63,941 nt of DNA, filler included, from Octopus bimaculoides (GCF_001194135.2; 6 parts of 6 records of this genome joined end to end with filler, not necessarily neighbours in it); one strand, 5' to 3'. Positions 1-26,950 are shown, numbered from the whole stretch's first letter. The notes: generated from the sequence alone by a model not told the origin. Numbers and translations are program-made.

Positions 1-27
1 TATATATATATATATATATATATATAT

Positions 28-130
28 GGAGCCTGGTGTTGCCATCCGGTTTCACCAGTCCTCAGTCAAATCGTCCAACCCATGCTAGCATGGAAAGCGG
101 ACGTTAAGCGATGATGATGATGATGATGAT
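28..130 (+). mobile_element. 3' terminus of an RTE-associated retroposon (SINE or LINE 3' UTR) with (GAT)n tail
   Basis: Matches the end of the longer copy at 44421-44770 (cagtcctcagtcaaatcgtccaacccatgctagcatggaaagcggac...gatgatgat). Confidence 0.75.
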
Positions 131-439
131 ATATATATACATTTACACACATTTTTATATGCACATTCTCATACACTAATACACACATATACATACAGAA
201 GATGAGTACAATAGATAATTATAACTTAGATAACTAAGACAGGTTTCGGCCAGTATAGGCCCAGGCTATGTCGAACATAATAGCACCACCTACAACTTCC
301 CCTTCCTCTCCCACCCTGGGTTTCTTAAGTATGTAATTAAGGAAAACAGAAACTTGAAGTAGTCTGAAAACAAAAGACAAAAATGACTAAGAATAGCTAC
401 AAGAAATAGTGAGTGCATCTACCAACTATATATATATAT

Positions 440-681
440 GGTAATCTTCAAGTTTAGGGGGATAAAAAAGATAAATAAAAATATTCAAGGGAAGTAACTG
501 AACGTCTTACCAGTATTCTCCGTACATCTCTGTTTATAAATAAATCACACACGTGATTTGATTGACGTTAGGATTAGGGTTAAACAGCTAGAAGAAAACG
601 GATAATACTGGTAAGTCGTTCAGTTATTTCCCTTGAATATTTTTATTTATTTTTTTTATCCCCCTAAACTTGAAGATTACC
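440..681. mobile_element. MITE with ~85-bp terminal inverted repeats, flanked by TA
   Basis: ggtaatcttcaagtttagggg...cttaccagtatt (440-524) is the near reverse complement of 599-681; TA dinucleotides on both sides. Confidence 0.75.
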
Positions 682-1110
682 TATATATNNNNNNNNNNNN
701 NNNNNNNNNNNNNNNNNNNNNNNNNNNNNNNNNNNNNNNNNNNNNNNNNNNNNNNNNNNNNNNNNNNNNNNNNNNNNNNNNNNNNNNNNNNNNNNNNNNN
801 NNNNNNNNNNNNNNNNNNNNNNNNNNNNNNNNNNNNNNNNNNNNNNNNNNNNNNNNNNNNNNNNNNNNNNNNNNNNNNNNNNNNNNNNNNNAAATAAAAA
901 AACGAAGGATACATTAGATTGTATAGATCTCCAGAAGCTACGGTACTATGTTTAAAAGCTGGACGGGAAAAAAAGGATAGTCAAGGCTGAAATACTTTTG
1001 ATTGTAGGTCTCGTCGATTAGGGCTGACCTGTGGCTAAACAATAACAACTCACAACAAAAATAAACTCACAACAACAGAAACGAAAAATAAAACAAAAAT
1101 AAACAACAAC

Positions 1111-1538
1111 CTGGCACCGGATTTGGTAAATATTTCTGCCCACTGGTTTGGGTCGAAGAACTCTGTGGTGAACATCGGAGCAAAATCCTGGTAGGTGAAA
1201 CCTGGCCTGTAATTATCCTTCATAAATTCCACACAACTCGGGTCCCGAGCCCCATCAAGATCCCACCAAAACCACTCAGACCGAAAACTGGGCACAGAAA
1301 ACACGCCCCAATGTAGGAAGATGCCGATTTTGGCCTCGTCGTACCATTTTGGTATGAGACGTGTGTCAAGAGATTGCCAATCGGGTTTGTATGGACCGCT
1401 AGAGTCGCTGGTCCGAAATGCTGTAACGTCCCAGGATAAACTTGTTAAAGATAGTAAAAGAACCAGGAATAATGTCGATGACGACCACCAAACAGATGCA
1501 GTTGAATCCGACACCATCTTCTTTGTTATGGCTTGCAT
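1111..1538 (-). CDS. FUCA1: Alpha-L-fucosidase (GH29) exon 1, copy A; downstream exons lie in the 690-890 gap or beyond the window
   Basis: 428-bp ORF: signal-peptide-like N-terminus, then [59 protein letters not shown]....SGAR. Phase-2 donor AG|GTTGTT at 1111/1110, same position as in copy B. The symbol denotes the FUCA1/FUCA2 family. Confidence 0.9.
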
Positions 1539-1805
1539 TCAGAATCAAGGTTTATATTGCCAGTATATCTATAACAGTAATTCATAAATAGTAACTGATC
1601 AACAATTAATCTTTAGTTAAAATGATTTGTGAGTGATCATAAGAATAGACGTGAAAAATAGAAACAAACACATGACTACTGCTGCCCCTGCTGCAATTGT
1701 CCACTACTGATGTTCCTGCTGCTGCTACAACTATGTACTTATATCTGTCTCTTGCTATTATTTGTTGCTACTACAGCAACTATCTCTTCTACTATTAATG
1801 TTTTT

Positions 1806-1953
1806 GGATCTTGTTCAAAACGGGGGGCACCAGTATTTTCTTAACGAAACACTTTGAAACTTGGGACACTGGTAGAAAAAAAAAGTCTTTCGGTACCAAA
1901 AACACTACATAAAACATAAATGAAAACTGGTGCCCCCGTTTTGAACAAGATCC
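1806..1953. repeat. Short inverted-repeat element (MITE-like) ~270-420 bp upstream of the copy A ATG
   Basis: ggatcttgttcaaaacggggggcaccagt (1806-1834) vs actggtgcccccgttttgaacaagatcc (1926-1953). Confidence 0.65.
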
Positions 1954-2884
1954 ATGTTTTTTTTCTTTGTAACACGAGCACACGGCCTAACATTTTAGAG
2001 GAAGGCGAATATTCCACTAAATCGACTCCCGTACTTTATTTCGATGACCTCCACCTCCCCTCCACGAGCGATGTGAAAGGCAAAGTTATCTTCGGTGTCA
2101 TTATAGTTTAGGTACCTTATAACAACATTTTCAGGTTGTGCAATTTACAGAAATTATTGCAGCTACCACTGAGATTAATTAAAATAAACACAAACGAACT
2201 GCATCATTTAAATTGAGCCGGTACCCTTTCATATTCCACTGTTTCATCACTTTTAATTTTTCTTATAAATCTTCGACATCAGATATTTAGATATTTTAAA
2301 GATTTTGCATTAATTTTTCTGTTTCCCCTTCTAACACTTCCTTAGTTTATGTAAGTTTCCGAGTTCGTTGCATAAGCTCATCTCTATGACAATACCGGCA
2401 AGGGGGCTTTTTGATTGGTTAAAATTACATTAATTTAAATGTTTGAAACTTCTTCGTTATTTATTTCTAAAAAAAAAATAGTTTAATGCATAAAATACGA
2501 CAACTTTAACATGAAATAACTTATTAAGAACTAATTTTTGTTAAGAAGGCTAAGAGAAAAAGATGTTTTATATGACACATTCTACCAGTATCCCAAGTTT
2601 GAAAGTGTTTCGTTAAGAAAACAAATGTTGCCCGTCAAACCAAAAAGATCCGCAATTTCCGTCATCAGCATACAAAACTACAACAAAACAATATTTTTTG
2701 AAAATAATCTGGTGACAATTTGTAAAACTTCACCTCCTCCCAGGCCCACAATTATTTCTTTTCTTCACGTTCTCTCTCCGTCCTGATATTTACTGTGTCT
2801 TATTCAATTCCTATATCTAAATTATCTATCATACCCTTTTCACTCCAGTATACTTATCTACAATCTACCCATTCGTTTTTTTCT

Positions 2885-3125
2885 GTTCCTCTATCCCATG
2901 ACTTTTGGGGATCCATATAAGATTTCAGTGTTAAAGCTTATGTGCAATAATTTGGTTATACTTTTAGAATACACAAAATATTTTAACAGTTTGAAGTATA
3001 GTTCCTAAAATATTTAATTATATGAATACCATAGGATTTTCTAACCAAGGAATGGTTACAAGGGTCTGCTTGAGTAAAATAGTTATCAAAAGGGCCTATA
3101 GGTAAAAAATGGCTGAGAACCATCG
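2885..3125. mobile_element. Degenerate hAT/Charlie-type non-autonomous element
   Basis: Ends in aaaaaatggctgagaacca, resembling the ggttgagaaccactg hAT terminus; the left TIR is decayed. Confidence 0.35.
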
Positions 3126-3223
3126 CATTCTCTGTCACATACTCAACATATACCTTGACCTATATCTCCCTCTTTCTCACTTTCCAGATGGGGAAGCCTT
3201 GTATTCATCTCTTCATAGCCTTC

Positions 3224-3560
3224 ATCATAGCTGTCCCTCAATCATATCAGATCCTTTATCATAGCAGTCCCTTTATCATAGCTGTCCCTCTATCATAGCA
3301 ACGGTCCCTTTATCATAGCATCAGTCCCGCAATCATAGCAGTCCCTCTATTGTAGCAGCAGTCCCTTTATTAGAGCAGCACCTCTATCATAGCAGTCCCT
3401 TTATCATAACTATCCCTATTGTAGCTGTCCCTCTATCATAGCCATCCCTCTGTCATAGCAGTCCCTCTGTCATAGCCATCCTTCTATCATATATTCATAT
3501 CCTTCAACTATACCCAACCCATATACTTCATATTCATATCCTTCAATTATACCCAGCCCA
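3224..3560. repeat. ~17-bp minisatellite (atcatagcagtccctct)n followed by a 39-bp tandem duplication
   Basis: About 15 diverged units at 3224-3491; tattcatatccttcaa.tatacccagccca at 3492-3530 and 3531-3560. Confidence 0.85.
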
Positions 3561-4149
3561 GTCTTGTCATCCAGGTATTTGGTGACCTTACCTATGCTGG
3601 TTCCATGAAAAATGTACCTCGTACCCTCTGTGAAGTGGTTGGCAGACATTGGAGCTTGATGCATTTCTTGGGTCACCAGTTCCTGTTCAATTGTCCAGCC
3701 CATGTTAGTATTGTTAAATGATGATGATAATGATGAGAGAGATTTTTAAATTTGCTTGGAGAAATTCCAAAGCCTTTATTTGGTATTAATAATTAGTACA
3801 CTATTATTTATGCTAATTTGTACGCTATTATTTTTTACCACAGGAAACAATGTCAGGTATGTTATATGCAACTTATATAATAAGCAAGGGAGATTTGAAA
3901 GGAACAGAAGCTCTTATTTGCGTTGCTCAAGAGTAAGCATTAAGAACTAACTACATAAAATTCCACATTGACAAAATGATCAAATCGCCATTGTATGTGG
4001 ATGTAGTTTTTTGGCACAGTGGGAGTAAAAGAGACTGCATGATAATAAGGTTGCTCAAATTGTACATTGATTTTTGCATGGGAAATACAACTTGGAAATA
4101 AGCTGAAATAAGTGGTATGAACACCAGCCACTCACTATAACAGTAGACA

Positions 4150-4612
4150 ATATGGTGACATTGCTATGGGATTTCAATGGGACAATGTGACTGAGGCAAG
4201 GAGACCTAATTTGATCCTGATTGAGAACAAAGAAAGATATTGCTGGATTATTGGCATCACTATCCAGGAGATATCCATGGGTCAGAGAAGGAGGACAAAG
4301 TGGATGGGTACCAAGATTTGAAGCATAAGATAGCACATTTGTGGGAACTGGGGTAAGTGGAAGTTATACTTGCTGTGATAGGGGCACTCGGAACCGTGAC
4401 AAACCAATTTCAGAAGCGGTTTGGCAAATGGTCTGAGATGCTGCAGAAAACAGCACTACTTGGAACATCCAGGATTCTGAGAAGAGTTATATCAATGTAA
4501 CTGGAATGGAAAAGCTGACAAACCCATGGCCATTAGTTATAACTCACTCCTGAACAAGAGATATCAACATACAATCTTTCTGAGAAATGTGATAATAATA
4601 ATAACAACAATA
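4150..4612 (+). mobile_element. R4/Dong-like RLE non-LTR retrotransposon, decayed 3' fragment with (TAA)n tail
   Basis: Broken translation LLWDF..EARRPNLIL..KE..YQDL...LW..VIGALGTV..LQKTALLGTSRILRRV, typical of the RLE C-terminus; ends in gataataataataacaac. Confidence 0.8.
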
Positions 4613-4680
4613 ACATTTTGAGTTTGCATATTTATAAAGTTTTTTTTTATAAATCCTTAAAGGAAAAAAAAAAAACTTAC

Positions 4681-5051
4681 TGTGCTCCAGAAGCAGCTAA
4701 TGTATTTGCCCAGACATCAGGGTTGAAGAATTCAGCAGTGAACATTGGTGCAAAGTCAGCATAGGTGAAATCAGGTTGGTAGTTTTTGTTCATGAAATCA
4801 ATATAAGCGGGAAGTTTTGTACCTTGCCAGTTCCACCAAAACCATTCGGAACCATAACTTGGCACAGAAAACACCCCCCAGTGAAGGAAGATACCAATTT
4901 TGGCATCATCATACCATTTTGGTATTGGTCGAGTGTCCAAAGAGCACCAATCAGGAGAGTAACGCATTTGTTTAGATCCATGTGATCCCTTCTGGAAAGA
5001 AACCAAAACAGCAAGTAAAAGGAGAGCAAGAATTATCTTGGAGATTGTCAT
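4681..5051 (-). CDS. FUCA1: Alpha-L-fucosidase (GH29) exon 1, copy C (divergent); intact, with no own exons 2-8 before copy A
   Basis: 371-bp stop-free ORF: signal peptide ([19 protein letters not shown]..), then [47 protein letters not shown]...SGA. Consensus phase-2 donor CA|GTAAGT at 4681/4680. Confidence 0.88.
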
Positions 5052-5667
5052 GATTCTTTGATTTGATTTGATTTGATTTGTATTTCCTTTGGAAGCGCAA
5101 AAATGTAATTGTTTAGGTTTTAGCTAAATGGTTGCTTGCTTTCTCTGTCTACAGTCTGTCTCTTCCCAACTATATATATATGTGTGTGTCTGTGTCTGTT
5201 TGTGTGTGTGTGTGTGTGCGTGTGCACGTGTGTATGTGTGCTTCCATGCATGCAGGTGTGTGTGTGTGTGCCATATCAAAATATTACCCCTTCCTCTATA
5301 CACCTTGACACAAATACCTATTTCTCTAATGATAAACAAACAAAATTGCTTCATTTCATTTGTTGTTTTAATTGTTGTTGTTGTTGTTTTGGTCTTTGCC
5401 CCAAAATGTAAAAATAGAAGTCACATGATGTTAGATTTTTGTTTATTTTGGTCCAACTTGACACAATTTATCTGTAGTGAGGGGTAGCCGGGTGGCCATG
5501 TTATAGCTTGTCTTCTATCGGCAGCAAGTTCAATTTATCAGATATGGTTGAATGGGGTTAAAGTGCATATCACCCACCAACACCACCACCACCACCAATA
5601 CCATTATCACCATCGACACCACCACCTCCAACATCCATTATCACTTTCACTGCTACCATCCTTGTTT

Positions 5668-5702
<35 letters not shown>

Positions 5703-6228
5703 TATCCTTACTGTCATCTCTAACTCTTCATTCACTGCCATCACCACCACCATCATAATCATCACCATCACTACTACCAAGTCTACCACGACCACTATCA
5801 TCATCATCATCATCATCGTTATCGTCATCATCAGTGCTCCCACCACCACCACCACCACCACCTTCCAACACTCTCTCTCCAGCACTGCTGTAAATAACAA
5901 TTGCCATTATCACAAACAATTGTCCCCAGGTGATTGTCTGATAGACCTGATAAAAGGGCATCTGGGTTCAAATAACATTCAAGTTAGTTTTACATTTTAT
6001 TTCTTCCGGGGGGGGGGGGAAGGATGCAGATTGAAACAAAGTACTAGTTCTATATCAATGTCATGAATATATTCAACATTGTTAAAAATGCTGTCTGGCT
6101 GTGGTTTAACAGATCAAAGAATTTCAGAGTGTAATCATTTTGGACATAGTGTGTGTGTGTAAGTCATTAATATATAAAACGTACGTGTATGTGTATATAT
6201 ATATATACACACACATATACATATATCG

Positions 6229-6346
6229 CCAGGGGTGTAGCCAGCCCACTTATGAGTACCTTCCTTCATTGGACACTACACTCTGCCAGCGAAGACCTGT
6301 TGAGGCAAGTGAAACTGAATGCTAGCATGGAAAGTGGACGTTAAAC

Positions 6347-6379
<33 letters not shown>
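6229..6379 (+). mobile_element. Truncated RTE 3' UTR piece joined to the tgctagcatggaaag..(GAT)n terminus
   Basis: 6229-6319 matches the reverse complement of ~40265-40362 (3' UTR of the RTE at 40192-42530); 6320-6379 matches the terminus at 28-130, 44730-44770 and 46460-46556. Confidence 0.75.
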
Positions 6380-6380
<1 letters not shown>

Positions 6381-8482
6381 CTTTCACTTTCCATCTTTTT
6401 GAGATGTATTCAATTGTCTGTAAATTACACTGTATAATTTTTTTTTTTTTCTGCATTACACACAAAATCACATTTTCAATATCGTTCAATCTCTGTGGCT
6501 TTCTCACTAGAAGTGGGGTAGTGTAAAAACTAGCACTTCTTTTCTTCACACTTAGATTCGAAACCGAATCTAAGGATTCTTGCTCATCTGAGCCACCACT
6601 GACCAAACAGGTGCGAAAGAATTTTCTTTGTCTTGTCAAAAAATGATGAATCGTCTCCCTTCGACCTACGACCTCAGCTATGTCAGGTGAAGTTCAAATG
6701 GACAAGAGCAGACCTATTTAGACACAATCTCTCCTGTAGTATGTCTGTCTTTCTAACTGCCACGGCTGTTATAAATACCATGGTCTGCAAAGGGACAGGC
6801 AGAAAGGACCTGGGATGCAGATAGAGCACATGAGATAGCCGACCAGTATTTTCTCAGCTGAACGATGCATACACAGATGCAAAACATATTCAGTCCTACC
6901 ACATCATATCACAGATGTATCCTGTTGTTTTTATTCTTCTCAGCTCGTAGCAGTTGACAACATAATTGATGGAGTGAAAAATTGTGTGTACCAACAGCAA
7001 ATGCAAGTCTCATAAATAAATTATTTAAACTATAAATTGATACACCTTTTCCACTACATATGTATATATATATATATATAGAGTTATTAATATTTCTAAG
7101 TCTCTCTAAAGGAGACTACGACAGCGGTACTGGAAATTAATAGTTATCGCCAAGCCAACATGGCAGTCCCAAAATTAGGACGAAAGCTGCCGTGAATTAG
7201 CTCCAAGAAGCCATCGCCTCTAGCTAGCTATGTGACACACGAAACCTGTGTCCTTTATAACCTTCGAACAGGGGAGGTCAGCAGTGTCCCCCTGCTGGTT
7301 TGGTATCTGCAGACTAGTTTCAGGGTGTTGCCCCTTGTCAATGCAGAGCAGCCAAGCCCTAGCCAGGCGGCGCTGCTGACTATCTGTTCGAAAGTTATTT
7401 ATCTAATNNNNNNNNNNNNNNNNNNNNNNNNNNNNNNNNNNNNNNNNNNNNNNNNNNNNNNNNNNNNNNNNNNNNNNNNNNNNNNNNNNNNNNNNNNNNN
7501 NNNNNNNNNNNNNNNNNNNNNNNNNNNNNNNNNNNNNNNNNNNNNNNNNNNNNNNNNNNNNNNNNNNNNNNNNNNNNNNNNNNNNNNNNNNNNNNNNNNN
7601 NNNNNNNNNNNNNNNNNNNNNNNNNNNNNNNNNNNNNNNNNNNNNNNNNNNNNNNNNNNNNNNNNNNNNNNNNNNNNNNNNNNNNNNNNNNNNNNNNNNN
7701 NNNNNNNNNNNNNNNNNNNNNNNNNNNNNNNNNNNNNNNNNNNNNNNNNNNNNNNNNNNNNNNNNNNNNNNNNNNNNNNNNNNNNNNNNNNNNNNNNNNN
7801 NNNNNNNNNNNNNNNNNNNNNNNNNNNNNNNNNNNNNNNNNNNNNNNNNNNNNNNNNNNNNNNNNNNNNNNNNNNNNNNNNNNNNNNNNNNNNNNNNNNN
7901 NNNNNNNNNNNNNNNNNNNNNNNNNNNNNNNNNNNNNNNNNNNNNNNNNNNNNNNNNNNNNNNNNNNNNNNNNNNNNNNNNNNNNNNNNNNNNNNNNNNN
8001 NNNNNNNNNNNNNNNNNNNNNNNNNNNNNNNNNNNNNNNNNNNNNNNNNNNNNNNNNNNNNNNNNNNNNNNNNNNNNNNNNNNNNNNNNNNNNNNNNNNN
8101 NNNNNNNNNNNNNNNNNNNNNNNNNNNNNNNNNNNNNNNNNNNNNNNNNNNNNNNNNNNNNNNNNNNNNNNNNNNNNNNNNNNNNNNNNNNNNNNNNNNN
8201 NNNNNNNNNNNNNNNNNNNNNNNNNNNNNNNNNNNNNNNNNNNNNNNNNNNNNNNNNNNNNNNNNNNNNNNNNNNNNNNNNNNNNNNNNNNNNNNNNNNN
8301 NNNNNNNNNNNNNNAGAAAGGGGACAGAGGTGTCAGAGACAGTACAGGAGAAGTGGAGGGCAGGATGGAAAGATTGAACGAAAGAGAGGAACGAGTCAAG
8401 ATGTTCACGGGAGAGAGAGGTGGCACCGATACAGTCGTCGATATACCGACCGTATAGTTCGGGAGTGGGACCAGTGAAACTG

Positions 8483-8668
8483 TGTCTTTCTGTCTATCTT
8501 TCTATCTGTCTGTCTGCCTGTCTGTCTGTATGTATGTATAGATAGATAGATATATAGATATGTGCATATATATATATATACATATGCACATATCTATATA
8601 TCTATCTATCTATACATACATACAGACAGACAGGCAGACAGACAGATAGAAAGATAGACAGAAAGACA
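8483..8668. repeat. Perfect 87-bp inverted duplication of a compound microsatellite around a 12-nt (TA)n centre
   Basis: 8483-8569 is the exact reverse complement of 8582-8668 (checked base by base). Confidence 0.95.
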
Positions 8669-8701
8669 GACAGATAGAGAGAGAAAGAGAAAGAGAGCAT
8701 G

Positions 8702-8707
8702 TTTATT
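8702..8707 (-). terminator. Candidate polyadenylation signal AATAAA overlapping the FUCA stop codon
   Basis: Minus strand reads GAT GAA TAA AC; AATAAA spans 8707->8702. Confidence 0.45.
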
Positions 8708-8958
8708 CATCAAGGTTTGTAATTTTAAACACCCACGCCCAGTCACACGGTAAGCTTGATATAGGGATGTCTGGTAGGTCAATTTTAAGCCCAGTCATAG
8801 AATAGTAACTGTATGTAAATATATTTGGATAGCCAAGCATGCGGACAACTGTTGCTGATGTTGGTTTTGCAGCTCCAAGGATGAGCATGTTATTGTTTGG
8901 CCAAAACAACGTAGTAGCATACACAACTTTTGTGTTGTTTTCCATTTTACTGGTATAC
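8703..8958 (-). CDS. FUCA1: FUCA copy B exon 8 (terminal)
   Basis: Acceptor ctccag|G TAT ACC AGT AAA ATG; [30 protein letters not shown]. Confidence 0.93.
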
Positions 8959-9896
8959 CTGGAGGAGAGAGAAATAGCAAAACAAGAAAAACAGATAATG
9001 GCATAGGTTTATTATGTATTCATACATATATACACATTTATATATTTTACAGAGAAGAAAGTAAATTTTGAATGCAGTAAAGCTGTAAAAACAGCAGAAG
9101 ATTGAGTATTTGCCCTTATCAGAAAGAGAAAAAAGTTGCCAGCAGGCAGCTATGGGAGTTGAACTTGTATCCCTCAAATACTGGCTGAGAGCTTCTACCA
9201 TTAAGCTAAATGACCCTTGACAACAATTACCACTAATTTTTAATGCTAAATTACAGTTTTTTGAATGTGACAACATTTTATAACAAACTTTGCAAGCGTC
9301 GAATGTGGTTGGATATGTAGACAGACAGAGAGACAGATAGGTAGACACAGAAATATCCTGTATACATGCATACACACATGCATAGATATGCAGAGACCTA
9401 TATGCACACTCATACATATATACATACATAGATGCCGAGTAAACTATTTGTGAAATAAACCAAACAAGGGAGTCGCTACGTTGGTGATTGATGTTCTAGA
9501 AATAGTAGCCAAATGTTTCTACTGTCTTATAAAAAATGAAGGGCACATTGGTAAATGTTTTTCAAGGTACACAATGTCAGCTAAATGATGCCTAAACAGC
9601 AACAAGAATAACAACATCTAAAATATTTCAGACAAATGAAGATAATGAAAGGAAGTATTCTTACCAAACTTTCTTTGTATACGTGTCATTCTGGTGGGTC
9701 CAAGGTTTGCTGGCATAGATGGCCTCTCCATTGACTTTGAGCCACTGACCAACTTGGACCAATCTTTCTTCAAAAATTGGAGCAATACGTCCATCGTGGG
9801 TGGGTCCAACGTTCATAAGAAGATTTCCTCCACAGCTAAGAATCAATTAGTTGATACAATCAATTGACAACAGCAGCATTAGCAAGTAAAGTACCA

Positions 9897-9930
<34 letters not shown>

Positions 9931-10324
9931 GTGGAGGCACAATGGCCCAGTGGTTAGGGCAGCGGACTCGCGGTCATAAGATCGCGGTTTCGATTCCCAG
10001 ATTGGGTGTTGTAAGTGTTTATTGAGCGAAAACACCTAAAAGCTCCTCGAGGCTCCGGCAGGGGATGGTGGCGAACCCTGCTGTACTCTTCCACCACCAC
10101 TTTCTCTCACTCTTTCATCCTGTTTCTGTTGTGCCTGTAATACAAAGGGTCAGCCTTGTCATACTGTGTCATGCTGAATATCTCCGAGAACTACGTTAAG
10201 GGTACACGTGTCTGTGGGGTGTTCAGCCACTTGCACGTTAATTTCACGAGCAGGCTGTTCCATTGATCGGATCAACTGGAACCCTCGACGTCATAAGCGA
10301 CAGACTGCTAACAGCAACAACAAC

Positions 10325-10367
<43 letters not shown>

Positions 10368-13145
10368 TGGGATTAAAAACAAAACCTGGCAAAAGGCAGA
10401 GGAACTTAAAAAGAGTCAATGGCCATCCATTCTGAAAACAGGTAGACAGAACTCATGAGCCTTGGTTGGTAGTCTGTCTAGGAGAAGGAATACTCTGATT
10501 TAAAACTTAGGGTAGATAGGACTCCTTACTCACAGTAGGGACAACCTGTCTCCTGATAGTCAAGCCCAACTCCTTCATGAAATCAACAAAAGTATGAGAA
10601 AAGGCAAGTATCTAGCACTTCCAAATAACCAGTGCTCTGGGTAGGCTATACTCATTAGCCTAGGAGAAGGAACACGCCAAGCCCAAAACCAGCTTATATA
10701 TATAATGAAACTGCAGCTTAAACTTAGGACGACAAGTTACATATGATTCAGCTGAATTTAAACTGGAGATTACGTGTAGAGTATGTTGAAATAAAGCTTG
10801 AAGTAAGGATTACAGGCAAGCTACAATAAAGCAGAACTTAAACTAGACAATAAGCTGTATAAGATGAACAGCTTAAACTGGGAACTACATGCTATCTATG
10901 ATGTAACAAAGCTTAAACTGGAAAGTACAAGTTTCATATGTTGAAACAGGATTTAAACTGATCCACATGCTATACATGATGAAACACAGCTTAAACTAAT
11001 GACTACAGAATCATGTATGTATTGATCAGGTTGTTGGTCTATACAGGTGGGTGGGTTAGGGGTAACATTGCTTACAGCAATGATTTAAACCACCTTGAAG
11101 TAATCTTGCAGCCAGATGAACTAGATCAGGGCAGGTCAGGTATGGAAGTGTGCACTGTTGCAGCTTGTAACTGCATCCACCAATCCTTGATCTCTTCAAA
11201 CAAGAACATAGAACAACAAACTGAAATCTTGTTTTTTTAACATTGTTGTTGTTGGCACTCCGTCGCTTACGACGTCGAGGGTTCCAGTTGATCCTATCAA
11301 CGGAACAGCCTGCTCGTAAAATTAACGTGCAAGTGGCTGAGCACTCCACAGTTCTCGGGGATATTCAGTGTGACACTGAATAGTGTAAGGCATTCTGAGT
11401 GATCCCCCAACAAATCTTACAATCCACAAAAGTAACAAAAACAAAAATACAATAATAAAAGATACCAAAGTCAGTACCAACCTGACGGTCTCGACTAGTA
11501 GAGATATCAGCCCTTCAATGGTATAATAGTCTGAGTAGCGAGCACGGCGCCGGTAGCCCCAGGAATACTTATCAATAGTCATGGCATTCTCCCATTTGTG
11601 ATTTATCAATTTACCTGGATGAACGACATTTAGAAGAAGACAATGGTTTACTGACAATTATCTCCAGTAACAAATTGAACTTTTTTTTAAATTTAAATCT
11701 TAAGTAGAAAACATAATGTTAACAACCAGAATAATGTACTTTCTTTTTCATCAGTTTCCCTCTTCAGTTTTGAAGAAGATTAAGTTAAGCCAAGCTCATG
11801 TCACAGTTTACCTCTTCAACATTGAAGATCAAATTTTGTCAGCTTATTATCATCAAGAATAAAGATTGACTTAATTAGAGTTCATGTCAGTTTATTTCTT
11901 CAATTTTGGTGCTGAAAGCAAGTTCATGTCAAATAAATCAATTCAAACGGAATGCATGTCACAGTTTATTTCATCAACTTTGAACAGATAACAGATATTC
12001 AGTGATCCTGTTATACATGGCCTCAAATCTACTTGATTCAAATCAAGCAGAGTTGAGACTAGTTTAACAGGATTACACACATCAGTTGTTAGTTAATAAC
12101 ATCCAATGCTGGGTTACAATTACTACAATTGTAGTAATTTTCAACAGGCTGGTATCAAAAAGATTGGTCTCTCAACTGCTTAAATGTTACACAAAATGAT
12201 GCTATATGCCTGTTGCTTAAAGAGTTAACATTAAAAACTTTTTCAAGCACCATCTCACCATTTTAGCAGACAAAAACATGTTCCAAGTAACATATAGCTA
12301 TCTTTCTATATATCAGTCATTTGATGTTTTGTACTCACCAGGATTATATCTATCTTGGCATGTGTAAAAGTCTCCATGGTGACAAGAATCTCCAGCTCCC
12401 CATCGGTCATTTACCACAACAGTGTCTTTCACTGGACTGGAAGAGAAAGACAGAGAAATGGAAGAAAATTTTATGTATTGACCAATCACAACGTAAAAGA
12501 TGTACTTGATTGGTATGGAATGGTTGAATTAAGGTGGAATCAGGGATGGTGGTGGAATAGAGCAAGAGAGAAATATGAGAGTGAATTAGAGGCAGGGTGG
12601 AGAGTAACGAGGGGAGGGGGTAAACTAGAGAGTGGAGGAAGATTAAAGAAAGAGGAGAAAATTAAAAAGGAATTTCAGAGTCAATGATTGAGGTAAGAAT
12701 TTGGTTAAAAATGTTTAATTTGAAATATGTGCAGAAATTATTTTCACTTTCAGGACAAAAATGTTATGCCAATGTTGTCATGGAAATAAGAGAAAAATTT
12801 TCCTGAAATTTCTCTAAAACCGAGAATTTCCCACTGCATATTGTTTATCCATCACACCAAAAACAAGTTACATTCCTCGCAATTCCAAACAAATCTAAGC
12901 ACTCAATAGTCCTTGAATGTGGAATCATATCATAAGCTTTCTGACAATCCATTATTTCCAGATATGGATGTTTAATGTTTAAATTTACAGATAACAACAC
13001 TCTATTCACCACAAACAAACATTAACTCCTACAATTCAACAATTTCAAATAATTAATTCCCAGGTTGGCCCATACAACTATGCATACCTTTTTTAATAAT
13101 ACCTTTCCCCATGCCCTTGCATATATTTTTTAATAATAATGATAA

Positions 13146-13177
<32 letters not shown>

Positions 13178-13413
13178 GTATCAGATTTAGCCACAAGGGC
13201 AGCAATTTTTGGTGGGAGGGGATGAGTTGATTACATTGACCCCAGTGTGCAACTGGTACTTATTTTATTGACCCCGAAAGGATGAAAGGCAAAGTCAACC
13301 CTTGCCGGAATAATAATGATAATAATAATAATAATAANNNNNNNNNNCTGGTACTTATTTTATTGACCCCGAAAGGATGAAAGGCAAAGTCAACCCTTGC
13401 CGGAATAATAATG

Positions 13414-13444
<31 letters not shown>

Positions 13445-13449
13445 TAATA

Positions 13450-13488
<39 letters not shown>

Positions 13489-14198
13489 GATTGATTATCA
13501 CAAAGCTTATGATATGATTCCACATTGAAGGATCATCGGGTGCTTAGATTTGTTTGGATTTGCAAGGAATGTAACCTGATTTTCTGAAGAGAAGTATGGT
13601 GGGGTGAAAAACTTGAGTTGACAGCCTATGGACATAGTTTGGGCACCCTTGGCATCAGGAGAGGGATTTTCCAAGACAATGGCTTATCTCCGTTGCTTTT
13701 TGTTCTCTGCATGATCCTGCTGACCTTGGTACTTAGGAAAATGAATCTGAGATATATGCTAAAGGGAAAATCTCAAAGTAAGAAATACAAGATGTTGTGG
13801 GGCTTTAACATTCAGACTGACAGAATGATAGAAGCTAGACGCTCTGATTTAGTAGTGGAAGATAAAGAAGATTGAAAGTGTCAGATGATTGACTTTACAG
13901 TCTCAAATGATGAAAAAATAGCAAAGTACCAGGACCTAGCCATTGAATTACAGAGACTATGGAAAGTTTGGGTAAAATGTATCCCAATAGTTATAGGTGC
14001 ATTGGGAACTATCCCTAAAAATCTGTACAGATGGATAGAGGAAATAGGCATAAAACCCAGTTTAGTACAACTCCAAAAAACAGTGTTATTAGGGACAGCT
14101 AGGATATTTAAGAGGGTTCTTGGCATCTAAGGTTACTTGTTGGAGCCTGATGTTAGGAATTTTTCTTTTCCAACGGTCTAATCTGTTGTGTGTATAAT

Positions 14199-14273
<75 letters not shown>

Positions 14274-15054
14274 CTGTCATTATAGAGCCATGCAATAAAC
14301 TCTGTCGAATTCCAGTATTTATCTGTTGCACCCGCTTCACCATCTGACCAAATTACATCAGGTTTGTAATTCATAACCAGTTCATACAACTCAGGCATAG
14401 TTTTCTCCTAAGGACATATTGAAATACATAGTTATTTAGGACAGGAACACTGAGGACAAAGATGGGCAGACGGACGGACAGACAGTCGGACGTACGGACA
14501 GACGGACACTCACATAAAGATAAAGAATCAAATGAAAAAGTGATTTTTTTAATGCTGTTCAGATTGTCTCTTACGAGAGTGATGCACAATATTTTCCAGA
14601 CGTTCCACAAAATTATTATTATGTGTGTATGTGTGTGTGTGTGCGTGCATACCTATCTATATTATTTAACACACGCACACACACACATGCACGTGCATAC
14701 ACATTAAAAGAGAGGCAGGCTAACAGACAAACAGAGACACAGACACAGATAAGCAGGAATTGGTCTGAACTTACCTGAACAAACTTTTGGGTTGTAAAAT
14801 TGTTGGCTTTGTCTTGTAGAAAGAGGGGGTGGAACCATTCAAAGAGAGAATGGTACAAACCAAAATGGATTGGAGTCTTCTTGATGGCAGCTGCAAGTTC
14901 ACCTGAAGGATGAGGGAGAGAAAAAGAAGTCACCTGTAATTGTTTTGTTAGGTATTGCTGGTGGTTGTGGGGTGTAAGGAGTGATAGGAATAAATATACT
15001 GATGTGAGCATGAAGAATATGCCAATGGGAGTGAGGAATGGGGGGAGCGAAGGG

Positions 15055-15098
<44 letters not shown>

Positions 15099-16664
15099 AC
15101 AACGACGATGGCGACGACGAGGCGGAGGAGGCAGAGGAGGAGGTGGAGGGTAGAGTTGAAGATTTTCAGGAAAATATAAACTAACCAACAAGGTCTCGTT
15201 TTGGCCCCACAGCTTTTGAGTTCCAATTCCAAGAGTGTTTAGATGGCCAGTTGGTGTATCCTTCATGGTGTTTGCTTGTTAGAACAACGTACCTTACAAA
15301 AGAATTTAGAAAAGAAATAATAATTAACCTTTAAACAGCAGAAGAGGGTTGCATAAATGTGTGCCAAACAAGCAAAAAATANNNNNNNNNNNNNNNNNNN
15401 NNNNNNNNNNNNNNNNNNNNNNNNNNNNNNNNNNNNNNNNNNNNNNNNNNNNNNNNNNNNNNNNNNNNNNNNNNNNNNNNNNNNNNNNNNNNNNNNNNNN
15501 NNNNNNNNNNNNNNNNNNNNNNNNNNNNNNNNNNNNNNNNNNNNNNNNNNNNNNNNNNNNNNNNNNNNNNNNNNNNNNNNNNNNNNNNNNNNNNNNNNNN
15601 NNNNNNNNNNNNNNNNNNNNNNNNNNNNNNNNNNNNNNNNNNNNNNNNNNNNNNNNNNNNNNNNNNNNNNNNNNNNNNNNNNNNNNNNNNNNNNNNNNNN
15701 NNNNNNNNNNNNNNNNNNNNNNNNNNNNNNNNNNNNNNNNNNNNNNNNNNNNNNNNNNNNNNNNNNNNCTTTAATTTCAAATAACATCAGATTCTTTAAT
15801 TTACGAGATAAAGTAATTGTATTTCGTGTGCAAGATTCTTGATGTGGATACGTGTGTTGAAAGAAATACAATTAAACCTTGGGAGATGCATTATGCCGGT
15901 AATAAACACACGCACTGGTTCAGTCCTTTATTAATTCATAAACAGTATATAGTTTTTTTATAAATTAATAAAGGCCTGAACCAGTGCCTGTGTTTATTAC
16001 CGGCATAATGCATCTCCCAAGGTTTAATTGTATAAAGTAATTGGTTGATTGTAATCAAAATTCAGAGTTGCATCGATACACCAAAATTGAAAGCAATCTG
16101 AGCAAAATTAAAGGTGGTTCATTTTGCGAATGACTGGGACAAACATCATACTTGTGTTGGATCAGGGGAATAAACAAGAACAGCAACAACAACATTTAAC
16201 AAGACAAACAAAGATAAAACAAAAATAAACAACAACCTGGCACCGGATTTAGTAAATATTTCTGCCCACTGGTTTGGATCGAAAAACTCTGTGGTAAACA
16301 TCGGAGCAAAATCCTGGTAGGTGAAACCTGGCCTGTAATTATCCTTCATAAATTTCACACAACTTGGGTCCCGAGCCCCATCAAGATACCACCAAAACCA
16401 CTCAGAGCGAAAACTGGGCACAGAAAACACACCCCAATGTAGGAAGATGCCGATTTTAGCCTCGTCGTACCATTTTGGTATTGGACGTGTGTCAAGAGAT
16501 TGCCAATCGGGTTTGTATGGACCACTAGAGTCGCTGGTCCGAAATGCTGCAACGTCCCAGGATAAACTTGTTGAAGATAATATAAGAATCAGGAATAATG
16601 TCGATGACGGCCACCAAACAGACACAGTTAACTCCGACGCCATCGTCTTTGTAATGACTTGCAT
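8703..16664 (-). CDS. FUCA1: Complete alpha-L-fucosidase (GH29) gene, copy B; join(16237-16664,15186-15292,14775-14902,14274-14407,12339-12436,11482-11614,9665-9835,8703-8958); 484 aa
   Basis: Eight exons, all GT-AG with matching phases; lengths 428+107+128+134+98+133+171+256 = 1455 bp. Motifs [34 protein letters not shown] (nucleophile Asp), VVNDRWG, KWENAM (acid/base Glu), [10 protein letters not shown]; conserved sequons WNST and QNDT. Confidence 0.96.
9665..9835 (-). CDS. FUCA1: FUCA copy B exon 7
   Basis: ttcttag|C TGT GGA GGA; [53 protein letters not shown]; donor TG|GTAAGA. Confidence 0.95.
9932..10372 (+). mobile_element. tRNA-derived SINE (family Y) in FUCA intron 6
   Basis: A box tggcccagtggttag, B box ggtttcgattccc, (CAA)/(TAA)n tail; homologous copies at 11243-11390 and 61395-61672. 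Confidence 0.8.
10705..11000. repeat. Degenerate ~39-40-bp minisatellite, ~8 units, in FUCA intron 6
   Basis: Recurring gcttaaactgg/atttaaactg core at roughly 34-42-bp spacing. Confidence 0.7.
11243..11390 (-). mobile_element. 3' fragment of SINE family Y, inverted relative to the 9932 copy
   Basis: Reverse complement matches 10165-10325 (cagccacttgcacgttaatt..gagcaggctgttcc..tcaactggaaccctcgacgtc). Confidence 0.85.
11482..11614 (-). CDS. FUCA1: FUCA copy B exon 6
   Basis: catccag|GT AAA TTG; [29 protein letters not shown]; donor AG|GTTGGT. Confidence 0.95.
12339..12436 (-). CDS. FUCA1: FUCA copy B exon 5
   Basis: ctcttccag|T CCA GTG AAA GAC; [34 protein letters not shown]; donor G|GTGAGT. 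Not listed in-frame in the ORF track. Confidence 0.95.
13487..14195 (+). mobile_element. R4/Dong-like RLE LINE remnant, internally deleted, embedded in (TAA)n in FUCA intron 4
   Basis: [13 protein letters not shown] and [17 protein letters not shown] (RT), then [42 protein letters not shown] (RLE); (AAT)n on the left, (CAA)(TAA)n on the right. Confidence 0.88.
14274..14407 (-). CDS. FUCA1: FUCA copy B exon 4 (catalytic nucleophile)
   Basis: ccttag|GAG AAA ACT ATG; [44 protein letters not shown]; donor AG|GTTATT. Confidence 0.95.
14775..14902 (-). CDS. FUCA1: FUCA copy B exon 3
   Basis: ccttcag|GT GAA CTT; [43 protein letters not shown]; donor CAG|GTAAGT. Confidence 0.95.
15186..15292 (-). 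CDS. FUCA1: FUCA copy B exon 2
   Basis: tttgtaag|G TAC GTT GTT CTA; [35 protein letters not shown]; donor G|GTTAGT. Not listed in-frame in the ORF track. Confidence 0.95.
15869..16030. mobile_element. Hairpin MITE (Tc1/pogo type) with TA target duplication, in FUCA intron 1
   Basis: TA|caattaaaccttgggagatgcattatgccggtaataaacac...gtgtttattaccggcataatgcatctcccaaggtttaattg|TA; ~70-bp arms. Confidence 0.85.
16237..16664 (-). CDS. FUCA1: FUCA copy B exon 1
   Basis: 428 bp, signal peptide plus N-terminal barrel; donor AG|GTTGTT; ~94% nt identical to copy A exon 1. Confidence 0.95.
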
Positions 16665-16841
16665 TCAAAATCTAGGTTTTTCTAGTCCAAGTGTATCTGA
16701 CCTTATTTTGCTCACACTTGCTCGCTGAACACTGTACTTACCACTCCTGCGAGAAATACTATTACTACCACTACTACTACTTTGTATTTATATATTATGT
16801 ATTTCTATTAGTGTTACTACTACTAGTACTATCTTTACAAT

Positions 16842-17829: not shown

Positions 17830-18290
17830 GAAAAGCGGTTGGCTTCGGGTAGGACAGAAGTGATGTGAACATAAGCAAGAGGCTGTGATACAGAATAAAG
17901 ATTACAGAATTTTATGGGATTTCTCCATAAAGACTGACCATACTACCGAAAGCAAGAAGATCAGAAATTATTAGAGAAGACAAAAGAAACAAATAGTGAA
18001 TGAGTATAGACTTTGCAATGCCATATCATAGATGATATAGCAAAGAAACTGAAACAACCGAGAAATATCAGGACCTAGTCAAAGAGTTGAAGTGATTTAG
18101 GGAGATAATTATTCCTCTGGTGATTGCTGCACTTGATACAATACCCAAACTGCTACCTCGGATGCTGAAGGATATTCGAATTGAGACTCGAAAAATGCCA
18201 TCCTGTATCCTTCAAGAATCTAAAGAAAAATTCTTGACATTTGAGGAGACTTGTACCAATCATAGCAACATTCTTACTGAATTAACATGT
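17830..18290 (+). mobile_element. Third R4/Dong-like RLE 3' fragment
   Basis: YRILWDFSIKTDH..IDFAMP..EKYQDLVKEL..IPLVIAALDTIPK in broken frames. Confidence 0.7.
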
Positions 18291-22050: not shown

Positions 22051-22586
22051 ATATAAAAATATACTTTAATCCCCTGAGATCGCAGATATTGTTTCTGAAT
22101 CTCTTTGATTCTTTAAATGTGCTAGCTTCCTGGTAATAAATCGATATTAATTAATATATGATTTTTTACCCTATGTTTTNNNNNNNNNNNNNNNNNNNNN
22201 NNNNNNNNNNNNNNNNNNNNNNNTTAATTAATTAANNNNNNNNNNNNNNNNNNNNNNNNNNNNNNNNNNNNNNNNNNNNGTGGTTAGGGTATTCGGCTCA
22301 CGACAATAAGGTCGTGAGTTCAATTCCCGGCGACGCGTTTTGTCCTTGAGCAAGACTTTACTCCAGTTCACTCAGCTGGCAAAAATGGATAAAGATGTCT
22401 TATGCTCTACGTTCAGCTGGGTCAAGAATGGGAGGACCGGGACTTTGCCTCGGTCTGCTCGTGGCTGTATAGGCTCCGAAAACAGTTTGCATGGTACAAG
22501 GTACCATGTCACACTCGCTGGTGAGTGTCAGGTATTCAAGACGATGCACACTCACATATATACATGTGTGTGTGTGTGTGTGTTCA

Positions 22587-22804
22587 CACAAGGGGTGCTG
22601 AAAAGTTCTTAGCTTTAGATAAAAGAAAATACAGGAGGATCAGTCCATCATGATTTTATTCAACATATTCCCCTACGAGATTCGCTCACTTATTGCAACA
22701 GTCCTTCAGTTTTTCTAAACCCTGTAAAAGAACTGGGAAGGCTGGGCTTCCAAGCAGGCCTTTCGCGATACCCTAAAAACCAGGAACTTTTCAGCACCCC
22801 TTCG
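22587..22804 (-). mobile_element. Mariner-derived non-autonomous element (TIR ggggtgctgaaaagttcctg)
   Basis: TIRs at both ends; reverse-complement homolog at 30163-30380. Confidence 0.8.
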
Positions 22805-25244: not shown

Positions 25245-25306
<62 letters not shown>

Positions 25307-25328
25307 TTAAGGTTAGCACAAGGCATGA

Positions 25329-26622: not shown

Positions 26623-26686
<64 letters not shown>

Positions 26687-26950
26687 NNNNNNNNNNNNNN
26701 NNNNNNNNNNNNNNNNNNNNNNNNNNNNNNNNNNNNNNNNNNNNNNNNNNNNNNNNNNNNNNNNNNNNNNNNNNNNNNNNNNNNNNNNNNNNNNNNNNNN
26801 NNNNNNNNNNNNNNNNNNNNNNNNNNNNNNNNNNNNNNNNNNNNNNNNNNNNNNNNNNNNNNNNNNNNNNNNNNNNNNNNNNNNNNNNNNNNNNNNNNNN
26901 NNNNNNNNNNNNNNNNNNNNNNNNNNNNNNNNNNNNNNNNNNNNNNNNNN

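Follow-up and report, generated by a model that had tools for sequence, protein, structure and literature searches.

The vertebrate UGT1A locus carries paralogous coding first exons in tandem, all of which have a start codon, a signal peptide, and a splice donor of their own and are joined to a common block of downstream exons; the substrate-facing N-terminal half of the enzyme comes from the variable exon, and the shared catalytic/cofactor part from the constant exons (PMC3325998, PMC1885805). GCNT2 (IGNT), described as a "multiple-variable-first-exon" cluster, possesses three alternative coding first exons and shared exons 2 and 3 (PMC1885805). In the protocadherin alpha and gamma clusters, the variable exons are equipped with individual promoters, and of the donors in a transcript only the promoter-proximal one is spliced to the first constant exon (PMC7811963, PMC3333863). 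Here, we analysed a stretch of 63,941 nucleotides, filler included, of Octopus bimaculoides DNA (CM046622.1; hereafter "the window") and conclude, with a probability of roughly 0.8, that gene A of a tandem GH29 alpha-L-fucosidase cluster is a small variable first exon/constant region locus. Gene A probably can make two enzymes that have different front ends and one catalytic core.

Gene A resembles UGT1A in its paralogous coding first exons, which are arranged in tandem on shared exons. It differs in number, with two first exons in gene A and three in Argonauta against 9–13 variable exons in UGT1A, and it encodes a GH29 hydrolase in which both catalytic carboxylates reside in the constant part. 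The variable part of gene A amounts to approximately the first quarter of a single barrel, whereas that of UGT1A is a separate domain, and the UGT1A exons have individual promoters, whereas we infer separate promoters for 1C and 1A, the two first exons of gene A. In array size, GCNT2 comes closest to Argonauta and Octopus, being likewise a small first-exon array of a glyco-enzyme in which each first exon contributes a large part of the catalytic domain and the 3′ exons are shared; it is, however, a vertebrate glycosyltransferase, whereas gene A encodes a glycosidase. Isoform-specific expression of GCNT2 has been demonstrated experimentally. With the vertebrate clustered protocadherins, gene A has in common that variable first exons are joined to constant exons, but nothing in gene A indicates the dozens of variable exons, the stochastic CTCF-dependent promoter choice, or the cell-identity function of the protocadherins. 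Human FUCA1 and ordinary metazoan GH29-A genes belong to the same family as gene A and have one first coding exon, in contrast to the two in gene A and three in Argonauta.

Both first exons of gene A are located on the minus strand in one gap-free contig (window positions 892–7407), which is bordered by N runs at 689–891 (203 N) and 7408–8314; an earlier note on this DNA had correctly described the stretch as gap-free but placed its start one position off, at 891. The coding part of exon 1C, the distal alternative first exon, extends from 5051 to 4681 (371 nt, 123 codons plus 2 nt) without a stop from its ATG onward, and is followed by a phase-2 GT donor at 4679–4680 (ACA/GTAAGT) at the homologous SGA(Q/R) codon. 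It codes for a signal peptide, the N-terminus being signal-peptide-like, and then for ~98 residues of the GH29 barrel. The coding part of exon 1A, the proximal alternative first exon, extends from 1538 to 1111 (428 nt, 142 codons plus 2 nt); it is intact, has its own ATG, and is followed by a GT donor at 1109–1110 (CAG/GTTGTT), also in phase 2 and at the homologous SGA(Q/R) codon. Its N-terminus is longer, likewise signal-peptide-like, and precedes a derived barrel segment. Stop-free reading, individual ATGs, signal-peptide-like N-termini, and phase-2 GT donors had been noticed before and were confirmed for both exons.

The Pfam profile PF01120 (Alpha_L_fucos) matched 1C (E 4.6e-37) and 1A (E 4e-36), each over profile positions 7–108, and 1C also matched human FUCA1 (7PLS; E 4e-40). 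These matches demonstrate homology and are not due to chance. Exon 1C is the ancestral, FUCA1-like first-exon type. The full-length proteins of the neighboring gene B and of two O. sinensis isoforms, X1 and X2 (see below), matched PF01120 with E 1e-135 to 1e-137 and Fucosidase_C (PF16757) with E 1e-23, and O. sinensis X2 matched human FUCA1 (7PLS) over its whole length (E 4e-189). In the alignment to 7PLS both the nucleophile motif WSDG and the acid/base motif HKWE were present. They are located in constant exons 4 and 6 of gene A (P0466), as anticipated by the earlier note, which had proposed that the catalytic Asp and Glu exons are shared. In human FUCA1, the nucleophile Asp is D225 and the acid/base Glu is E289. 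When the 1C or 1A peptide was the sole protein query, the matches were short fragments and, from octopus, only the window's own 96-aa ORF; since a full-length query later found close octopus relatives, these peptide-only blanks are not evidence of absence. An exhaustive representative search retrieved nothing beyond the guide sequences, and exact look-ups of the window ORFs, of a 137-aa RefSeq model containing 1C, and of O. sinensis X2 matched no contig.

When all exons of gene B were used as queries in a very permissive tblastn search (word size 2, E ≤ 50), nothing better than E 0.04 was detected for exons 2–8 anywhere in positions 1–7407, in agreement with the previous observation that such exons are absent between 1C and 1A. 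The interval separating the two (1539–4678, minus strand) contains no fucosidase exon remnants and shares collinear blocks with both O. sinensis and O. vulgaris, alongside lineage-specific insertions. A degenerate retroelement fragment is found in this interval at about 4055–4560 on the plus strand, and a 17-nt tandem repeat at 3224–3491. For 1C transcripts the interval would make up the 5′ portion of the long first intron, and for 1A transcripts upstream/promoter DNA. Positions 1–1108 (minus strand), which include the 203-N gap, would be the start of the intron toward the shared exon 2. A gap of 1837 N adjoins window position 1 and hides exons 2 and 3 of gene A, and exons 4–8 follow 2.4–9.8 kb beyond the window's left end (in O. 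bimaculoides L005 coordinates: 1A, 6078–6505; N run, 7616–9452; exon 4, at 9992; end of exon 8, 17395). Of the constant set of gene A, exons 4–8 are visible in the O. bimaculoides assembly, and exons 2 and 3 fall into the gap.

Exons 4–8 of gene A constitute the RefSeq model XP_014782909.1 (260 aa), and 1C occurs in a single O. bimaculoides RefSeq model, XP_014782911.1 (137 aa); the two models are pieces of one gene, split by the assembly gap. As its last exon, XP_014782911.1 takes an acceptor-like site (TGTTATAG/A; 1526–1570, minus strand) whose AG at 1570–1569 follows a weak pyrimidine tract, 31 nt upstream of the 1A ATG, and opens an out-of-frame reading of 13 codons (1568 to 1526). This model could be taken to mean that 1C is a regulatory leader, which is spliced to the site at 1570 so that a first ORF ends after 137 aa, overlaps the start of 1A, and modulates translation or stability of the 1A enzyme. 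The model has exactly that junction (4681 to 1568), and both O. sinensis and O. vulgaris retain the TGTTATAG motif. However, purifying selection on ~100 codons of enzyme core is not expected of a mere leader, the pyrimidine tract is poor, and a 6-nt insertion in O. sinensis would put a stop directly after the site, where the sequence would read CAC TAA. Moreover, neither RefSeq isoform X2 nor the octopus mRNA described below uses the acceptor-like site, both skipping 1A entirely. The 137-aa model as genuine splicing of 1C to a 1A leader was considered and ranked low, a leader function being very improbable; the last exon of XP_014782911.1 most likely was patched in by the annotation because exons 2 and 3 are missing.

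In contrast to the O. bimaculoides gene with its two fragmentary models, the orthologous O. sinensis locus is already listed in RefSeq with first-exon isoforms. Isoform X1 (XP_029649577.1, 484 aa) is 1A-type and X2 (XP_029649578.1, 465 aa) is 1C-type; they differ in the first exon alone and are identical from exon 2 to the end. Both are unpublished automatic predictions annotated as alpha-L-fucosidase-like. In addition, an intron-less RNA-seq contig (SRR3401912, L007) from an octopus meta-transcriptome (PMC11662614) consists of a 5′UTR and a 1C-type exon followed by exon 2 and onward through exon 8. On the O. sinensis genome this contig aligned in eight blocks with the 1A position skipped, and its exon-exon junction falls exactly at the 1C donor. 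The junction of a 1C-type exon with exon 2 thus occurs in mRNA of another octopus than O. bimaculoides. Together with X2, this contig bears out the earlier expectation that 1C is spliced over 1A to exon 2. The junction of 1A with exon 2 of gene A is predicted by the computational RefSeq model X1, and 1A of gene A presumably is used at the RNA level as well.

Nucleotides 10–110 of the SRR3401912 transcript, which belong to the 5′UTR, aligned unbroken upstream of the 1C ATG in O. bimaculoides (L005 2457–2564, equivalent to window positions 5159–5052) and O. sinensis (L006 9891–10000). Upstream of the ATG, the 5′UTR of the C-type transcript is genome-continuous over 100 nt or more, and the putative 5′UTR of exon 1C in the window occupies positions 5052–5159 (minus strand). 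The 1C promoter should be located just upstream, within the ~3.6 kb that separate the gene B stop from 1C.

The cores of both 1C and 1A are under purifying selection. Between O. bimaculoides and O. sinensis, dN/dS was 0.20 (p = 6e-4) for the 1C core, 0.26 (p = 0.014) for the 1A core, and 0.14 for constant exons 4–8, and in the comparison with Argonauta it was 0.08 for 1C, 0.16 for 1A, and 0.08 for the 1A core. At growing distances the 1C core yielded values of 0.20, 0.13, and <0.1, all significantly below 1. For 1A versus O. sinensis the significance applies to the core only, the whole exon having a dN/dS of 0.52 (p = 0.1), not significantly below 1. A dN/dS near 1 for the orphan exon, which the earlier note had named as evidence against its own reading, was not seen for either core.

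These values bear on the possibility that 1C is the dead relic of a former tandem copy, which lost exons 2–8 by deletion and gives rise to no productive mRNA in O. bimaculoides. Such a relic would fit the truncation to 137 aa of the sole O. bimaculoides model with 1C, and also the 1C orthologue in the O. vulgaris assembly, which carries a frameshift by a 1-nt deletion in an A-run; this frameshift may be an assembly error, or the O. vulgaris lineage may truly have lost the 1C isoform. However, the assembly gap that removes exons 2 and 3 explains the 137-aa model, and 1C is intact in O. bimaculoides, O. sinensis, Argonauta, and the SRR3401912 transcript, with the donor at the same position in O. 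sinensis (ACA/gtgagt) and Argonauta (CAA/gtaagt). Considering also the low dN/dS of its core and the splicing of 1C-type exons to exon 2 in octopus mRNA and in O. sinensis X2, we regard a relic as quite unlikely.

Upstream of 1C and 1A, gene B (8703–16664, minus strand) is a complete GH29 gene of eight exons that encodes XP_014782908.1 (484 aa). Its exons 1–4 are located at 16664–16237, 15292–15186, 14902–14775, and 14407–14274, and exons 5–8 at 12436–12339, 11614–11482, 9835–9665, and 8958–8703. The single first exon of gene B, 1B (16664 to 16237), is 1A-like, and no C-type exon was found upstream of it in the window, L004, and L008, or within 10 kb upstream of gene B in the gap-free O. sinensis assembly. 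Eight exons with a single first exon are likewise present in the O. sinensis B and D paralogues. The true O. sinensis orthologue of gene B is XP_029649645.1, which is situated directly upstream of 1C. A 477-aa O. sinensis protein (P0345) was rejected as gene B orthologue, its locus (L002) being 750 kb away beside a Brix-domain gene; no C-type exon was found near that locus.

A tract of 483 bp around 1A (1071–1553, minus strand) is 93% identical to positions 16198–16679, a stretch made up of exon 1B, the 15 nt preceding it, and 40 nt of its intron. As the flanks cannot be aligned, the sequence comparison points to a short gene conversion or an exon-sized duplication, and because of this common tract part of the apparent conservation of 1A could reflect gene conversion from an expressed paralogue. 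Gene A might even start at 1C throughout, with 1A being an unused intronic copy of 1B that is kept similar by gene conversion. The whole-exon dN/dS of 1A and the fact that the sole RNA contig retrieved is C-type would agree with such a copy, but several observations render it unlikely. An intact A-type exon with ATG and phase-2 donor occupies the equivalent relative position in O. sinensis, O. vulgaris, and Argonauta, the 1A core has a low dN/dS in comparison with both O. sinensis and Argonauta, and RefSeq X1 uses 1A. Furthermore, the variable segment of O. sinensis 1A reads LDGVRDPVCMEF, as opposed to LDGVRSPRFVKF and FAEKRYPVYVKF in the first exons of both paralogues, and O. sinensis 1A therefore is not merely a converted copy.

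The window belongs to a draft assembly built from short reads and interrupted by numerous N gaps, in which exons 2 and 3 of gene A are missing, and a collapsed or mis-joined contig could in principle conceal a full exon set behind each first exon. Against this, 1C and 1A lie within a single gap-free contig, and their order, spacing, and collinear non-coding blocks recur in two independent, gap-free, chromosome-level assemblies. In O. sinensis (L006, L008) and O. vulgaris (L001), gene B is followed by 1C, 1A, and a single set of exons 2–8. An array of the same type exists in Argonauta hians, where three intact first exons precede one constant set, and no exon 2–8 remnants were found within the first-exon arrays of the gap-free sequences L001, L003, and L006 (O. 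vulgaris, Argonauta, and O. sinensis). An assembly artefact, the concern of the earlier note about collapse or mis-ordering, is extremely unlikely in view of these genomes, which also answer the question of conservation in other octopods.

All first exons of the window, of O. sinensis (1C and 1A), and of Argonauta (all three) have GT donors in phase 2. In the phylogenetic tree the C-type exons of Argonauta and Octopus formed one clade (bootstrap 89), and the C/A split thus predates the divergence of these genera. Tentatively, and with odds that we place somewhat below even, octopods may possess a GH29 variable-first-exon array older than the Argonauta/Octopus split, in which promoter choice swaps one wall of the active-site barrel. 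The array would have comprised the exon types C (FUCA1-like), A (with a derived WWDLDG...CVEFM segment), and D (SAWFWW, in which the conserved Glu beside the fucose pocket would be replaced by Ala). Its isoenzymes would differ in substrate/aglycone specificity or tissue distribution, and in Octopus, duplication of the constant exons would have split part of the array off as separate genes, B and D.

For gene A itself, the layout, the RefSeq isoforms, the RNA contig, and the dN/dS values support the earlier suggestion of variable first exons on a shared constant region. Two paralogous first exons stand in series on the minus strand, 1C being distal and 1A proximal and derived. Each contributes a start codon, a signal peptide, ~95–100 residues of the N-terminal (beta/alpha)8 barrel, and a phase-2 donor, and one downstream set of exons 2–8, shared under this model, encodes the C-terminal beta domain and the rest of the barrel, in which the nucleophile Asp (IWSDG) and the acid/base Glu (HKWE) are located. 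If transcription starts upstream of 1C, exon 1A, presumably without a used 3′ splice site, would be removed within the long first intron and the 1C donor would be joined to the exon 2 acceptor, creating a Gln codon (CA+G). If it starts upstream of 1A, this exon would be joined to that same acceptor, creating an Arg codon (AG+G). The expected products are two secreted or lysosomal isoenzymes with common catalytic exons, which would differ in ~40% of the first-exon residues, including the segment right after the conserved SEWFWW motif, which lines the fucose pocket. The 1C and 1A isoforms may also differ in expression or substrate specificity. The earlier note had envisaged fucosidases with different targeting peptides and N-terminal barrels. 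The first exons indeed differ, but a change of compartment is not indicated because both N-termini look like secretory signal peptides.

The isoforms of gene A are already implicit in the O. sinensis RefSeq entries and represent no new principle, and a literature search found no paper describing this exon array or its conservation. As far as we found, gene A would be the first case of a UGT1A- or GCNT2-like organisation in a glycoside hydrolase, and it would be an invertebrate example of the variable-first-exon layout. First-exon choice would here reach beyond a leader or UTR and exchange a portion of the catalytic barrel, leaving the catalytic Asp and Glu unchanged. The fragmented O. bimaculoides annotation is repaired by uniting XP_014782911.1 and XP_014782909.1 in one gene. 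Finally, the contrast between Argonauta, with three first exons on one constant set, and Octopus, with two first exons plus two separate paralogues, would offer a tractable case of interconversion between exon arrays and tandem gene families; should the ancient array be real, the octopod clade would be a natural series that links alternative-first-exon loci and tandem gene families.

On the minus strand of the window, two first exons of a GH29 alpha-L-fucosidase gene lie in series, the distal exon 1C (5051->4681, 371 nt) and the proximal exon 1A (1538->1111, 428 nt), and each is stop-free from its ATG. Their donor sites (ACA|GTAAGT in 1C, CAG|GTTGTT in 1A) place the GT directly after two bases of a homologous SGA(Q/R) codon. 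The N-terminal 100 positions of the Pfam family Alpha_L_fucos are matched by 1C (E 5e-37) and 1A (E 4e-36), and 1C also matched human FUCA1 (7PLS; E 4e-40). The protein identity of 1C to 1A, and to a third first exon, 1B, is about 56%. Both 1C and 1A are located within a single gap-free contig (892-7407) bordered by N runs at 689-891 and 7408-8314. A deliberately permissive tblastn search for hidden exons, using each exon of the neighbouring complete paralogue (gene B) as query, found no trace of exons 2-8 in positions 1-7407 (best spurious match E 0.04). The coordinates, donors, Pfam matches and tblastn results bear out the earlier note, which had described two intact fucosidase first exons in series with nothing of exons 2-8 between them. 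The anatomy of the locus, with 1C and 1A preceding one shared constant set of exons 2-8 (together gene A), can be regarded as virtually certain.

In the interval between 1C and 1A, a 17-nt unit (ATCATAGCAGTCCCTCT) is repeated in tandem about 15 times with 72% matches (3224-3491). The interval also contains degenerate fragments of retroelement ORFs (LRQGDLI..., ...VIGALGT...LLGT.RILRRV...; 4055-4560), which recur within intron 4 of gene B (13618-14130); both copies are on the plus strand and thus antisense to the fucosidase genes. The 1.45-kb stretch holding the first of these copies (about 3033-4486) has no counterpart in Octopus sinensis, which indicates a lineage-specific insertion.

Exon 1B (16664->16237, minus strand) heads gene B, a complete gene of eight exons with canonical GT-AG introns that ends at 8703 and whose 484-aa product is exactly XP_014782908.1. 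On the minus strand, gene B is followed 3.65 kb downstream by 1C (with a 907-N scaffold gap between them), 1A and the window edge. Exons 1A and 1B share 93% identity over 483 bp only (1071-1553 and 16198-16679), a tract comprising the exon with 15 nt of upstream sequence and 40 nt of the following intron, whose flanks are unalignable; this suggests a recent short gene conversion between the first exons of the two genes. In O. bimaculoides, 1A and 1B both read LDGARDPSC, a segment in which their O. sinensis orthologues are unlike each other (LDGVRDPVCMEF and LDGVRSPRFVKF). Gene B further carries SDGEAGATD in exon 4 (14274-14407) after the nucleophile Asp, and its O. sinensis orthologue SDGEGHASD, whereas gene A and most GH29 members have SDGDWEA(P/T)D; gene B has thus lost the conserved Asp-Trp beside the nucleophile, and its activity may be altered.

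A protein search with exons 2-8 of gene B retrieved two O. sinensis RefSeq isoforms, X2 (XP_029649578.1, 'alpha-L-fucosidase-like isoform X2', 465 aa), whose N-terminus is the 1C orthologue, and X1 (XP_029649577.1, 484 aa), whose N-terminus is the 1A orthologue and which is near-identical to O. vulgaris CAI9739057.1. After the first exon both isoforms are identical to the C-terminus, and their 19-aa length difference equals that between 1A and 1C. Single-exon peptide queries in the word-indexed protein search missed these full-length octopus proteins of 85-100% identity, which the longer query recovered. In the gap-free O. sinensis locus (L006, L008; CM016880.1:7,810,633-7,861,287), 1C (10001-10371) and 1A (14720-15147) precede one constant set (exon 2 from 23834, exon 8 ending at 40652). 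The gene B orthologue (XP_029649645.1) has a single first exon, lacks any C-type exon within 10 kb upstream, and is separated from 1C by a 7.8-kb spacer. The gap-free O. vulgaris locus has the same layout, the non-coding DNA of window positions 1-6176 is block-wise collinear with both species, and no remnants of exons 2-8 were found inside the first-exon array of any gap-free locus examined. An assembly artefact as the source of the layout is therefore ruled out by the shared array and the collinear blocks. The O. vulgaris 1C orthologue (OX597835.1, L001 5460-5475; about 4795 in the window) is one nucleotide short in the homopolymer AACAAAAAC (A5 to A4), which causes a frameshift, while the A-run is intact in O. 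sinensis and O. bimaculoides; this reflects either an assembly error or a recent loss of the C-type isoform.

Direct evidence that a C-type exon is productively spliced to the shared exon 2 comes from another octopus species. A 1542-nt intron-less Logan contig from SRR3401912 (L007) encodes a 465-aa protein of the same protein cluster as X1 and X2 and aligns to the O. sinensis genome in eight blocks, starting with the 5'UTR and C-type first exon (9891-10370) and continuing with exon 2 from 23834 to exon 8. It skips the position of 1A, its exon-exon junction lies exactly at the phase-2 donor, and its 5'UTR aligns without interruption to genomic sequence preceding the 1C ATG (about 5159-5052 in the window), as expected for a true first exon. 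Directly upstream of the alignment start, a (CA)n/(TA)n microsatellite ending in TATATATATA (window 5171-5240) could provide a TATA-like element for a putative 1C promoter or be a coincidence. Direct splicing to the constant set was thus observed for one first-exon type, the C-type; splicing of 1A to exon 2 in gene A is suggested by the O. sinensis RefSeq pair. Overall, the locus probably produces two isoforms through the alternative use of its first exons (probability about 0.8).

Nei-Gojobori comparisons between O. bimaculoides and O. sinensis yielded a dN/dS of 0.27 for the whole exon 1C (Fisher p 0.002) and 0.20 for its core (p 6e-4), 0.52 for the whole exon 1A (p 0.1) and 0.26 for its core (p 0.014), and 0.14 for constant exons 4-8 (p 4e-9), with near-neutral evolution of the signal-peptide parts. 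Against Argonauta the values were 0.08 (1C) and 0.16 (1A), at saturated dS. Neither exon thus shows the dN/dS near 1 that the earlier note had named as counting against its proposal, and the apparent constraint on 1A could be inflated by the 1A/1B gene conversion.

Mechanistically, each first exon would have its own promoter, and in transcripts started at 1C, exon 1A, presumably lacking a used acceptor, would be spliced out as part of the intron. The UGT1A and protocadherin clusters are known to follow this cap-proximal-donor logic (PMC3325998, PMC1885805, PMC7811963). Exon 2 begins with G, completing Gln after 1C (CA+G) and Arg after 1A (AG+G), as in X2 and X1, respectively. By inspection, 1C has a short n-region, a hydrophobic stretch and ...SHG|S, and 1A a 20-residue n-region, a hydrophobic stretch and ...VTA|F. 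As the N-termini of both exons resemble signal peptides for secretion, the isoforms likely differ in roughly 100 mature residues rather than in compartment. The motifs HWG and SEWFWW, which contribute fucose-binding residues in the T. maritima and human structures, are kept in both exons, and the 29-residue segment behind them differs strongly. Constant exon 4 encodes the nucleophile Asp (IWSDG), and constant exon 6 the acid/base Glu (HKWE).

The gap-free locus of Argonauta hians contains one fucosidase gene, located between an SH2-domain and a Brix-domain gene, in which three intact first exons in series precede one set of exons 2-8 (22162-28176). The C-type (10007-10395), A-type (12071-12501) and third-type exon (17853-18274) each carry an ATG, encode a hydrophobic N-terminus and end at a GT donor in phase 2. 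Neighbour-joining grouped the C-type exons of O. bimaculoides, O. sinensis, the SRR3401912 octopus and Argonauta into one clade (bootstrap 89), which places the C/A split before the Argonauta/Octopus divergence. Among the A-like exons, similarity within species suggests conversion. In their constant regions, the Octopus paralogues A, B and D cluster together and apart from Argonauta, which fits the constant part having been duplicated later, in Octopus. The third type shares the pattern SAWFWWY(Y/F)A.K..P.Y..FM, in which Ala replaces the conserved Glu of SEWFWW, with the first exon of O. sinensis paralogue D (P0345; L002 10001-10407). The Argonauta exon shares one constant set with the C-type and A-type exons; its O. 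sinensis counterpart is the first exon of a complete gene of its own, 750 kb away and beside the same Brix-domain neighbour as the Argonauta gene.

The first 22,179 nt of the window match CM046622.1 (GCA_001194135.2) with 0 mismatches. There, an 1837-N gap adjoins window position 1, exons 4-8 of gene A follow 2.4-9.8 kb beyond and correspond to XP_014782909.1 (260 aa), and exons 2-3 are absent from the assembly. XP_014782911.1 ('tissue alpha-L-fucosidase-like [Octopus bimaculoides]', 137 aa), found in the 90% cluster of the 1C ORF, consists of exon 1C and a 13-codon tail (1568->1526) that is out of frame with 1A and lies behind an AG at 1570-1569. The same AG in O. sinensis is followed by a 6-nt insertion that would bring an immediate stop, and it is not used. 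We infer that the annotation lets this tail stand in for the missing exon 2; the annotation of gene A is split into the 137-aa and 260-aa pieces because of the assembly gap. UniProt A0A0L8GA35 (477 aa; window 16643 to past the left edge), the original O. bimaculoides gene model, is a chimera of exons 1-3 of gene B and exons 4-8 of gene A that skips gene B exons 4-8, 1C and 1A; this is probably an artefact of annotating a draft with gaps.

Full-text searches of the published literature retrieved no paper on fucosidase isoforms in octopus or on fucosidases with alternative first exons. The octopus locus is organised like the 'multiple variable first exon' loci UGT1A, the clustered protocadherins and GCNT2, the last of which has three coding first exons. 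It shares with them a tandem series of paralogous coding first exons ahead of one constant set. The two isoforms are already listed in the O. sinensis RefSeq, and the organisation is not a new principle. Anatomy, conservation, constraint, one type of RNA junction and the RefSeq isoform pair all support variable first exons on a constant region, as initially proposed. This reading of the locus mends the broken fucosidase annotation of O. bimaculoides and provides a conserved invertebrate glycosidase example of variable-first-exon organisation.
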